Below are positions 34,758 through 52,829 of a stretch of 64,000 nt of DNA, piece by piece. The stretch is from assembly GCF_020745735.1 (NCBI RefSeq), contig NC_083435.1:13733201-13797200 (forward strand), given 5' to 3'. The notes under the pieces were generated by a model. That model was not told the DNA's origin. It did no database searches and saw nothing but the letters and a program-made list of their open reading frames with translations. Made by a program: the position numbers and the translations under genes. Within the stretch, counting starts at the first letter, position 1; every line of letters starts with the position of its first letter. The stretch comes from Hemiscyllium ocellatum (Eukaryota).

Positions 34758-34815
34758 ATGGTTTTCCGACAACTGCTGGTCCTAATGCTGTCGATCAGCT
34801 TTCCGAGCAGCGCAG
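34758..34815 (+). CDS. Exon 1 (signal peptide) of a V-TM-ITIM IgSF receptor
   Basis: ATG at 34758 reads MVFRQLLVLMLSISFPSSA plus 1 nt (n-region Arg, hydrophobic core, small residues at the end). It is followed by a consensus donor CAG|GTGAGT in phase 1, which matches the phase of the V exon. Confidence 0.88.
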
Positions 34816-34988
34816 GTGAGTTCCACTGATTTTTGCCGCTCCAAATCGAGAATAGAAAATACTGTTATTTTGCTTGCAAATATTAGACAGACCAATGGTG
34901 TTATAAGAACCTGGACTGGTTGAAATGTCCACAGAACGTCAAGCGCCTGCAACTCAGAGAACGCTGATACGTGAAACATTTGTACAAT

Positions 34989-35287
34989 CATAGAATCGCT
35001 GTGGGAGCAGGTCCACACCGACCCTCCCAGACCCATTGTCCTACACTATTCCTCTACGTTTACCCTTAACGAATGCATCTAACCTACATATCCCTGAATA
35101 CACTAGGCAATTTAACATGGACAATCCACCCTAACCTGCACATCTTTGGATTGTGGGAGGAAACTGGAGCACCCGCAGGAAACCTACACAGACACGGGGA
35201 GAATGTGCAAACTCCACACAGACAGTCGCCCAATCGAATCCGGGTCCCTGGCACCGTGAGGCAGCGGTGCTAAATTGTGCCGCTCCC
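34989..35287 (-). mobile_element. HE1-like V-SINE in intron 1
   Basis: Reverse complement of the same head and central domain (acacggggagaatgtgcaaactccacacagac). Confidence 0.85.
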
Positions 35288-36469
35288 GCATTTATATCCT
35301 AAAGCCTGGACGCACAGAGGTGGAGTTTCTGCCAGAATCTCCCTATCTCCCGCTTGGAACTTTGATGGGAGACCGTCTGTTTAATTATCTCATCCTACTT
35401 CGCATCGAAATTACGCCGAAGGGTTATAGATATTTCTGGCGAATGTTTTAATTGAGTTAAAGCCGATTGGTGAAGCGTTGGTGACAGGAATTGACGTCCA
35501 TGTTAGATTTCTCAACAATAATTGAAAGGCAAGGTTCAATTCTGAAGCACATTGCATAATTCAATGCCATGTAAATTCATAGATTTTTTTTAATTAACAA
35601 GCACGTGCAATAATTATAACATAATCGTTTGCTTTCATACTGTTCGAGGGATGAACGCCTCGCTGACATTTGTGTTGTTCACAGGATTATTCGCCCAGGC
35701 TTTGGTGTTGTCTAGATATTGCTGCTTGGGGATTGCTTAGATATCTGAGCAATTGTGGATTCAGCACAAGCGCTGTTTGATCGTCCTTGAACTTCCCCAT
35801 AATCTTAGCCTCCTGACCTGATATCGTCGATCAGGCAAAGTCAGCATTTTCCAGCCGTCTGGTGGATCTGCATTCTAACAGTGGCCTTCACAATGTCGGA
35901 CGAAGCACGTTGTTACTAACAATTCCCAACTTCCCCTGAACACCAACCGGCCAACATCCACTGCCGGTGTAACCCAAAACTACAGGCATTATTTGTGGCA
36001 GTCACCTCACTTCGTTTGTACCCTTATTTTCACCCTTATCAAAACTTCTGCTAATCTTCCGTCTTTCTGTTCCTCCTGTACTATCCCTTTTCTCGATCCT
36101 ACGTCAATGAAACATCCTCATTTTGTATTCCCCACTATTCAATATCCACTCTGGCCCCAGCTCTTCTTCTGATTGCTTTGCTCCCGTGATCTGTTCTACT
36201 CCAAATCACAACGCCGTTTTGATTTCTCTTTGCAAACCACACTGCACCTTGTGTGTGTTTTTTAATTGAATTACATTTCCTTGAAGTTCAGAGCTCGCTT
36301 CGACATTTCAACAACAAGAGTAAGGGAGCAGTAATGCTTGGAATATGAGATCTGGAAAGTGTTATATCAGTACAGCGTGCATTGTCACATCTCCTAGGAT
36401 AACCGCTTTGTAAGATTAAGGGCTCGCCAGCTATCGGGAACACAATCACTTGCTCGTCTTAAATACATG

Positions 36470-36810
36470 ACGTTAAAAATCACACAACACCAGGTTGTTG
36501 TCCAATAGATTTATTTGGAAGTACAAGCTTTCGAAGCACTGCTCTCTCGTCAGGTAGCTAATGGGGCAAGACCATAGAACATATAATTTATAGCAAACTA
36601 TCAATTCAGTGTCCTATGATCCTGACCCACCAGCTACAGATAGTTTGCTATAAATTCTGTGTCCTATGATCCTGCCCCACTAACTACCTGAGGAAGGAGC
36701 AACGCTCCAAAACCTTGTATTTCCAAATAAACCTGTCGGACTGTAATTTGGCGTTGTTGTGACCTTTAACTTTGACCATCCGAGTCCAACACCGGCACCT
36801 CCACATCATA
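36470..36810. mobile_element. Penelope terminal-repeat fold-back in intron 1
   Basis: Inverted arms at about 36474-36600 and 36640-36770, each with a hammerhead-like motif (minus about 36528-36556, plus about 36686-36712). Confidence 0.75.
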
Positions 36811-51900: not shown

Positions 51901-52490
51901 ACAACATTTGGGAGACTTTGGGAAGGAAAGGACGAAGAGTGACCATACTCATTGACAAGAATATTATAGTGCTGAAGAGTAAGAATGTCCTAAAGATGTC
52001 ATGACAGAATCTATTTGGTTAATGATAAGAAAGAATAGACACCATTACAGCAGTCGGTACATTCTACAGGCCTTGAACTGGGTAATGAAATTCGAGAAAT
52101 GTGGAAATTGTAGAGTGGTTATAATGATATTCCATCATTTGTCCTATTTTGTCTTTGAAGCATTTGTGTAAATGATAGCATGGTGAACAATTGTCTGAAA
52201 TCCAAGGGTGTGTACTAGATCAGTGTTTTTATTCCAATTTTCAGTTGCTCTGGCACAGATCTGACATGGAGACAATGGCCCATGTGGGTTCCCTCTGTGT
52301 TGGAACCATACCTATAATTCTATTGCAATTTCCCTCTGCACCTTACTCAATGCTATAATCATACCCTACTAATCGCTATCATTCCTTGTCACAATATTTC
52401 ACCAATATGGAATCTGGACTCTGGTTCCTTAATGCCAAATGTAAATTATTCAAGTTCCTTTAAAAGTGTTTGTTTTATTCTGCCTCACAG

Positions 52491-52571
52491 ATGCTTGGAT
52501 TATACATTCCAGGACATCTTTCTCAGCACCACCTGAAACTGCCCCCTCTATCACCAGAAACAGGACAACAG
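52491..52571 (+). CDS. Possible cassette exon (81 nt, phase 0-0) MLGLYIPGHLSQHHLKLPPLSPETGQQ
   Basis: Good acceptor gtttgttttattctgcctcacag, donor CAG|GTGGTG, and a 129-nt intron to the terminal exon. In frame between exon 4 and exon 5. The donor is weak and the sequence has an inverted copy nearby, so it may be repeat-derived. Confidence 0.3.
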
Positions 52572-52700
52572 GTGGTGGAAATAGCACCACCTCCGAACAC
52601 GACTCCAAGCTTCACCTCAAAAAGTCAATATTCTATGTATTACTTCATTGCCATGTATTGGGGGTTAACCTAACTTTAATCTTGTTGCAATCATTATTAG

Positions 52701-52829
52701 GTACATTCTAATCATGGCAGCGATCATAAAACGTCCATCCATTATGCCAAAGTAAACAGTAAAAGAGAGAAAGAGAGGAGGACCATGGAATGTGAGCCAA
52801 ATTATATCGAGTATGCAACCATCCATTGA
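52701..52829 (+). CDS. Terminal exon: cytoplasmic tail with two ITIM-type motifs
   Basis: After the acceptor ttattag the phase-0 frame reads VHSNHGSDHKTSIHYAKVNSKREKERRTMECEPNYIEYATIH*, with TGA at 52827-52829. IHYAKV and IEYATI fit (S/I/V/L)xYxx(I/V/L), with tyrosines 23 residues apart. Too short to appear in the ORF track. Confidence 0.85.
   Translation, partial: VHSNHGSDHKTSIHYAKVNSKREKERRTMECEPNYIEYATIH

Follow-up and report, generated by a model that had tools for sequence, protein, structure and literature searches.

A seven-exon gene of the shark NCR3 (NKp30) family with a putative inhibitory tail in Hemiscyllium ocellatum

Results

Exon structure of the gene

We examined a stretch of 64,000 nucleotides (nt) from Hemiscyllium ocellatum (contig NC_083435.1, positions 13,733,201 to 13,797,200 of the forward strand), called the window here and numbered from its first letter. 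It carries a candidate shark NCR3 (NKp30) receptor gene on its + strand. An earlier note, made from the letters of the window, had described an intact five-exon gene for an inhibitory receptor with a single variable (V) domain. By direct reading we reproduced those five exons (exons 1, 2, 3, 6, and 7 below), with AG...GT and a pyrimidine tract at every internal boundary, phases of 1, 1, 1, and 0, and a join of 678 nt and 225 amino acids (aa). The gene is real and open; what did not hold was the count of exons, as two micro-exons inside intron 3 of that model had been missed. Together the micro-exons make up 48 nt, keep the frame, encode the 16 residues VILRLKRDNSATNTTY, and have AG and GT sites on both. 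A 16-residue segment of this form ([VA]ILRLKR followed by nine residues, the last of them usually Tyr) is present in all full-length relatives between the transmembrane (TM) exon and 46730-46758, and it is conserved in Chiloscyllium punctatum. Therefore, the full gene has seven exons, a coding sequence of 726 nt, and a product of 241 aa; it is free of stops, all of its sites are AG/GT, and its phases are compatible. The exons are as follows, with a slash marking the exon edge.

34758-34815, + strand: exon 1, 58 nt; ATG and signal peptide; ends in phase 1; donor GCAG/gtgagt
37451-37792, + strand: exon 2, 342 nt; VJ-type V-set immunoglobulin domain; phase 1 to 1
38801-38920, + strand: exon 3, 120 nt; 12-aa Cys-free stalk, 24-aa uncharged TM segment LFLGLGGAVTLLVITIMFLTFGLI, and RQNK
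45787-45805, + strand: exon 4, 19 nt; VILRLK plus 2 nt; phase 1 to 2; cttccag/TAATCT...GAAAAG/gtacac
45905-45933, + strand: exon 5, 29 nt; (R)DNSATNTTY plus 1 nt; phase 2 to 1; tattacag/AGATAA...CGTATG/gtatgt
46730-46758, + strand: exon 6, 29 nt; AVPNLQQTAQ; phase 1 to 0; exon 4 of the earlier five-exon model
52701-52829, + strand: exon 7, 129 nt including TGA; tail with IHYAKV (Tyr at 52743-52745) and IEYATI (Tyr at 52812-52814)

The micro-exons (exons 4 and 5) were found by scanning the Chiloscyllium plagiosum peptide against intron 3, which gave a single match of 10/15 residues, and then reading the DNA. Exon 4 is identical in C. punctatum, and the motif ILRL(K/R/N)R was present in 6 of 6 orthologues. 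Exons 1 and 5 each differ from C. punctatum by 1 nt. Compared to the nurse-shark NCR3 protein, the leader in exon 1 was 68% identical, the product of exon 3 was 70% identical, and the tail in exon 7 was 55% identical, while the AVPNLQ of exon 6 is common to the nurse-shark and C. plagiosum proteins. Within its interval, the 342-nt exon 2 is the sole open AG..GT exon of that size.

The window DNA is colinear with that of C. punctatum, at 91 to 97% identity. In that genome both micro-exons are kept along with their splice sites, and the first six exons are open. These six exons showed 18 differences over 597 nt (97% identity), compared to 91 to 94% identity in the introns. The transcript structure proposed here is a prediction by comparison, drawn from the deposited nurse-shark protein, the RefSeq models, and the conservation of exons and splice sites.

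The 225-aa form could be a genuine minor isoform that skips both micro-exons and exists in addition to the 241-aa form. Dropping 48 nt preserves the frame, and a Scyliorhinus isoform omits the whole TM exon, which implies that in-frame skipping occurs in the family. However, we found no orthologous protein that is without the ILRLKR segment and keeps the remaining tail, and each micro-exon has a good acceptor tract and a GT donor. We consider such an isoform unlikely.

We also looked at a longer, damaged exon upstream of 46730, which a tblastn alignment of the nurse-shark DLGATNTTY with intron sequence read as DISQTSIST had brought up. We rejected this idea, as the upstream sequence is the same in C. 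punctatum and the true micro-exons are located 0.8 to 0.9 kb upstream. No other copies of the tail exon were found within the 114 kb examined or in a protein search of the whole genome.

Orthologues of the gene

Among 1.84 billion representative proteins, the best match to the product was the nurse-shark protein QTT61901.1 (E 1.9e-49; 78% identity in the V domain), which is entered in GenBank as “natural cytotoxicity triggering receptor 3” of Ginglymostoma cirratum. When QTT61901.1 was searched back in this genome, the window gene came out best, which makes the pair reciprocal best hits. The 241-aa product was 93.8% identical to that of C. plagiosum, 73.9% to nurse shark, 58% to Heterodontus, and 54% to Mustelus, and its tail aligned without gaps with every orthologue. 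Further close relatives were found in C. plagiosum, C. punctatum, Heterodontus francisci, Mustelus asterias, Scyliorhinus canicula, and Heptranchias perlo, and a number of these carry the automatic name NCR3-like. Proteins named NCR3-like are also present in sawfish, bichir, sturgeon, and tortoise.

The nurse-shark protein shares the architecture of the window gene from the leader to the last residue, including the gap-free tail, the uncharged TM segment, the ILRLKR segment, AVPNLQ, and EYATI. It differs in that the tyrosine of the first ITIM (immunoreceptor tyrosine-based inhibitory motif) is missing (SICNAKV) and that three fewer residues lie between the motifs. The direct orthologues are LOC122541531 of C. 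plagiosum (an XP model of 287 aa) and chiPu_0012135 of C. punctatum. The micro-exon peptides of LOC122541531 are identical to those of the window gene, while its distal motif is TEYATI, of the ITSM (immunoreceptor tyrosine-based switch motif) type, compared to IEYATI in the window gene. The chiPu_0012135 model ends after the V exon.

We believe that the locus is very probably an intact seven-exon gene whose product is an inhibitory-type receptor of the shark NCR3 (NKp30) family, orthologous to QTT61901.1 and to the NCR3-like RefSeq shark models. The gene belongs to a published shark NCR3 family and has named orthologues. In sharks, NCR3 is a non-rearranging VJ gene linked to the major histocompatibility complex (MHC) (PMC12227049; PMC10751288), and the nurse-shark NCR3 genes are MT914154-MT914161 (PMC12227049).

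The C. plagiosum XP model also has an N-terminal extension of 46 aa before the Met that is common to the nurse-shark protein and the window gene. Residues 1 to 46 of that model are probably an annotation artefact; they include KAFVKVPHGRLVQKI, which resembles part of a retroelement reverse transcriptase.

The V domain and its family

The domain encoded by exon 2 has Cys27, Trp43, DSDTYYC, and a J-like GNGTTLEV strand, germline-joined in one unrearranged exon, and it matched Pfam V-set with an E value of 7.5e-12. A search of a 5.8-billion-protein set with the V domain only returned just two C. punctatum proteins and zero transcript-derived fragments. We modeled the domain with AlphaFold (AF2; predicted local distance difference test score, 86.8) and used the model in a fold search. 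The NKp30 chain 6yjp_A came first, with a Z score of 14.8, a root mean square deviation of 2.3 Å, 108 of 111 residues aligned, and 28% identity.

We built a tree from 31 V domains. In it, the window gene paired with C. plagiosum (support, 100/97), and the subtype clade around the two (97/96) also took in the sequences from nurse shark, Heterodontus, Mustelus, Scyliorhinus, and Heptranchias. Shark sequences of the SIRP-like kind were placed in other branches.

This placement bears on a different reading of the V domain, in which the gene would be a SIRP-family inhibitory receptor cut down to one V domain. When the PDB was searched with the single sequence, human NKp30 (1.2e-6) and SIRP-alpha (1.1e-6) were the equal best non-antibody matches. 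SIRP-alpha is also an ITIM receptor, and some of the shark relatives carry the automatic name SIRP-beta-like. However, with a shark-only profile built from six orthologues, four NKp30 entries led (E 2.9e-10 to 3.9e-10; 43 bits), and SIRP-alpha, with 35.7 bits, followed as the nearest other receptor family, approximately 7 bits behind. Besides the tree, the absence of a C1-set domain (the TM exon comes 1 kb after the sole V exon), the NCR3 names of the closest named proteins, and the position of the locus in an MHC-linked NCR3 cluster all argue against a shortened SIRP, which we regard as very improbable.

Human NKp30 is an activating receptor that lacks an ITIM, is encoded in four exons, and couples to CD3-zeta/FcR-gamma through a TM Arg. 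The window gene differs from it in the uncharged TM segment, the two ITIM-consensus motifs, and the seven exons. The two are alike in the single VJ-type V domain and in an MHC-linked gene, and human NKp30 (PDB 3NOI, 3PV6, and 6YJP) was the best profile and fold match.

Transmembrane segment, tail, and proposed signaling

The product is a single-V, type I membrane receptor, and the earlier note had likewise described a single V domain, an uncharged TM segment, and tandem ITIMs. Its TM segment has zero charged residues. The 75-aa tail has two motifs, IHYAKV and IEYATI, that fit the ITIM consensus [SIVL]xYxx[IVL], with their tyrosines 23 residues apart. The combination of an uncharged TM segment with two ITIM-consensus tyrosines suggests an inhibitory receptor.

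A TM Arg for coupling to adaptors with an immunoreceptor tyrosine-based activation motif (ITAM), a feature of mammalian activating NKp30, is absent in the window gene. The earlier note had taken this as a mismatch to NKp30. The absence conflicts with the description “activating NKp30” but not with NCR3 family membership as used for sharks; the window gene corresponds to the inhibitory form of the shark family, and a form with a TM Arg lies next door (see below).

The motifs were compared in the six sequences that include this tail, namely those of the window, C. plagiosum, nurse shark, Heterodontus, Mustelus, and Scyliorhinus; the model from Heptranchias differs at its C terminus. The YAKV core was present in 5 of the 6 sequences, with CNAKV in nurse shark, and the EYATI core was present in all 6. 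At position -2 of the distal motif, the residue was I, T, V, A, or D.

In the signaling model that we propose, the V domain would bind a B7H6-like or other cell-surface ligand, and Src-family kinases would phosphorylate the tyrosines of IHYAKV and IEYATI. By analogy with other ITIM/ITSM receptors, the tandem-SH2 phosphatases SHP-1 and SHP-2 may then be recruited and lymphocyte activation damped.

The structure of the tail also bears on how the gene was first read. PD-1 has five exons, and its tail has a membrane-proximal ITIM and a distal ITSM (TxYxx[VI]) with an EYATI core. The earlier note had recognized the PDCD1 exon layout in the locus and placed the gene in the CD28/PD-1/NKp30 group, possibly as an unnamed member. 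The gene would then be a five-exon, PD-1-like checkpoint receptor. The five exons do join in frame, and the window gene shares with PD-1 a single V domain, an uncharged TM segment, and two tail tyrosine motifs approximately 23 to 25 residues apart, with an EYATI core in the distal one. The end of the tail, C-x-P-x-x-x-EYATI, resembles the ITSM region of PD-1, and C. plagiosum has TEYATI. However, only EYATI is kept among the shark orthologues, the C-x-P flank being confined to a Chiloscyllium-like lineage. The layout does not agree either, as the gene has seven exons, four of which are cytoplasmic.

The V domain argues against PD-1 as well. PD-1, CD28, and CTLA-4 were absent among the 60 best PDB matches, with the single sequence and the shark-only profile alike, and PD-1 was not in the top 50 fold matches of the V-domain model. 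Compared with other V-set domains, PD-1 is not detectably nearer to the V domain of the window gene. Within the group proposed in the earlier note, NKp30 stands, as the best match to the shark profile, while the CD28/PD-1 side does not. The domain has the J-like GNGT motif, its complementarity-determining region 3 (CDR3) reads CNIHVFGAEKRHGNGT, which is proline-free, and its stalk, RKELEKNSGNTN, is Cys-free; the earlier note had correctly remarked on the lack of a CD28-type proline motif and of a stalk Cys. The CD28 family is marked by a cysteine in the stalk and by a CDR3 motif with proline (MYPPPY, PPP, or EIP) (Quiniou et al. 2024; PMC11599192). Shark PD-1/CD28-family genes have been catalogued with other motifs and other synteny, and the synteny markers of chondrichthyan pdcd1 are muc4, tnk2, and rtp (PMC11599192). 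The window gene sits in an MHC-linked cluster of NCR3-like V genes. We consider the PD-1-like reading largely refuted and extremely improbable.

Linkage to the MHC

Across the genome (3.98 Gb), 82 of 82 MHC_I matches and 3 of 3 MHC_II_alpha matches were on the contig of the window (C113), at 24 to 46 Mb. The window gene is at 13.77 Mb of the same contig, within a cluster of NKp30-like V exons at 13.50 to 13.82 Mb. MHC linkage had been named in the earlier note as the synteny that would favor NCR3, and it is what we found. With the reciprocal best hit to nurse-shark NCR3, this also settles whether the receptor is an unnamed one: by the earlier note's own measure, a reciprocal best hit and synteny with a described shark gene remove the novelty. 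A 2021 report by Kinlein et al. (Immunogenetics 73:333) is said to describe eight MHC-linked shark NCR3 subtypes.

Observations that weigh against the assignment

Some of our results count against an inhibitory shark NCR3 gene and have to be set beside those above. First, the MHC genes are at least 10 Mb away, which is linkage and not adjacency. Second, the margin between NKp30 and SIRP is small for the single sequence, and in the fold search PILR tied with NKp30, as expected for V domains. Third, the ITIM flanks are incompletely conserved, with SICNAKV in nurse shark and Ala or Asp at position -2 in Heterodontus and Mustelus; for this reason, phosphatase recruitment is something that we infer. 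Finally, when sequencing runs were searched for the gene, the stretch was well represented only in runs without an RNA label, which were taken as genomic DNA. V-exon words were found in small shares (15% and 6%) in two runs of a related organism that were guessed to be RNA.

These run searches raise the question of whether the gene is an unexpressed or decaying copy that is intact by chance or was recently silenced. No RNA run clearly contains the exons, the introns are swollen with retroelements, and against C. punctatum there were 11 nonsynonymous changes versus 5 synonymous changes. However, none of the seven exons is interrupted and every splice site is intact; in C. punctatum the first six exons are open and better conserved than the introns. 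The orthologue has been deposited as a protein in nurse shark and modeled in four other sharks, and immune receptors commonly show an excess of replacement changes in their V domains. A copy in decay is quite improbable, and we retain the assignment to an intact inhibitory-type NCR3 gene.

A neighboring paralogue with a TM arginine

A paralogous V exon lies on the minus strand at C113:13728334-13728672, approximately 39 kb upstream of the start codon of the window gene and approximately 4.5 kb before the window start. Compared to the V exon of the window gene, it showed 73% protein identity and 83.5% DNA identity, and the likeness was confined to the exon. Approximately 2.2 kb downstream of this V exon is a stalk/TM exon, with a Cys in the stalk (RKINISNCVELK) and an Arg in the TM segment (TALSFVLRTTIILLVFILVILLIC). 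We found no convincing candidate for a leader exon of the paralogue. C. punctatum holds both genes as consecutive locus tags, chiPu_0012136 being 90% identical to the paralogue V domain and 77% identical to that of the window gene. In the tree, the V domain of the paralogue was placed inside the inhibitory subtype, beside the window gene, with weak support (82/74).

A stalk Cys together with a TM Arg is the pattern of activating NKp30, and on these residues the paralogue is likely the activating partner of the window gene. It would signal positively via an ITAM adaptor, and the two neighbors look like a paired inhibitory/activating receptor set. In a further reading, the paired set would be common to at least Chiloscyllium, and the activating V exon would come from the inhibitory lineage; the YAKV...EYATI tail is conserved across four shark orders. 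Together these points would mean that the ancestral shark NKp30 subtype was inhibitory, a reading that we put forward tentatively and hold to be doubtful. If it were true, and if the 2021 paper on shark NCR3 does not already describe it, it would add modestly to what is known of how natural killer-type receptor pairs arose.

As a discovery the gene carries little weight, and the use of this analysis is corrective and descriptive. It gives the correct exon structure, including micro-exons of 19 and 29 nt that reading from sequence only and short-peptide searches miss. It also documents a tyrosine-motif tail conserved among sharks of four orders and an adjacent paralogue with a TM Arg. These are relevant to the evolution of inhibitory/activating receptor pairs and to that of NKp30 next to the MHC.

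Repeats and other V exons

The locus had been called repeat-filled in the earlier note, and the introns indeed hold several copies of a reverse-transcriptase-bearing repeat. The window has at least five retroelement copies, which are diverged, and one of them has, on the minus strand (31854-32357), an open reading frame with an RVT_1 match. When the window (1-64000) was scanned against Rfam at gathering thresholds, no family was returned. The repeats were located as follows.

39264-43500, both orientations: retroelement-derived repeats in the intron between exons 3 and 4, as direct/inverted repeat families
31400-33100 (31.4-33.1 kb), both orientations: further retroelement copies
47300-48900 (47.3-48.9 kb), both orientations: further retroelement copies
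53340-53930 (53.3-53.9 kb), both orientations: further retroelement copies

Much of the intron bulk is due to these retroelement copies, as is a strong guanine-cytosine (GC) skew.

Other V exons were seen outside the window. A much more divergent VJ-type V exon lies approximately 22.3 to 22.6 kb past the window end, on the minus strand at C113:13819496-13819813. It belongs to the same cluster as the window gene, with approximately 29 to 35% identity, a GAGASLIV strand, and a long branch in the tree. More clusters of single V exons related to NKp30/SIRP were found at 13.50 to 13.61 Mb and 25.0 to 25.7 Mb of C113 and at approximately 72.0 to 72.1 Mb of contig C50. The V copy at 25.69 Mb of C113 grouped with a great-white-shark protein automatically named SIRP-beta-like. 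The copies on C50 are near-identical V exons arrayed in tandem, with a spacing of approximately 21 to 26 kb.

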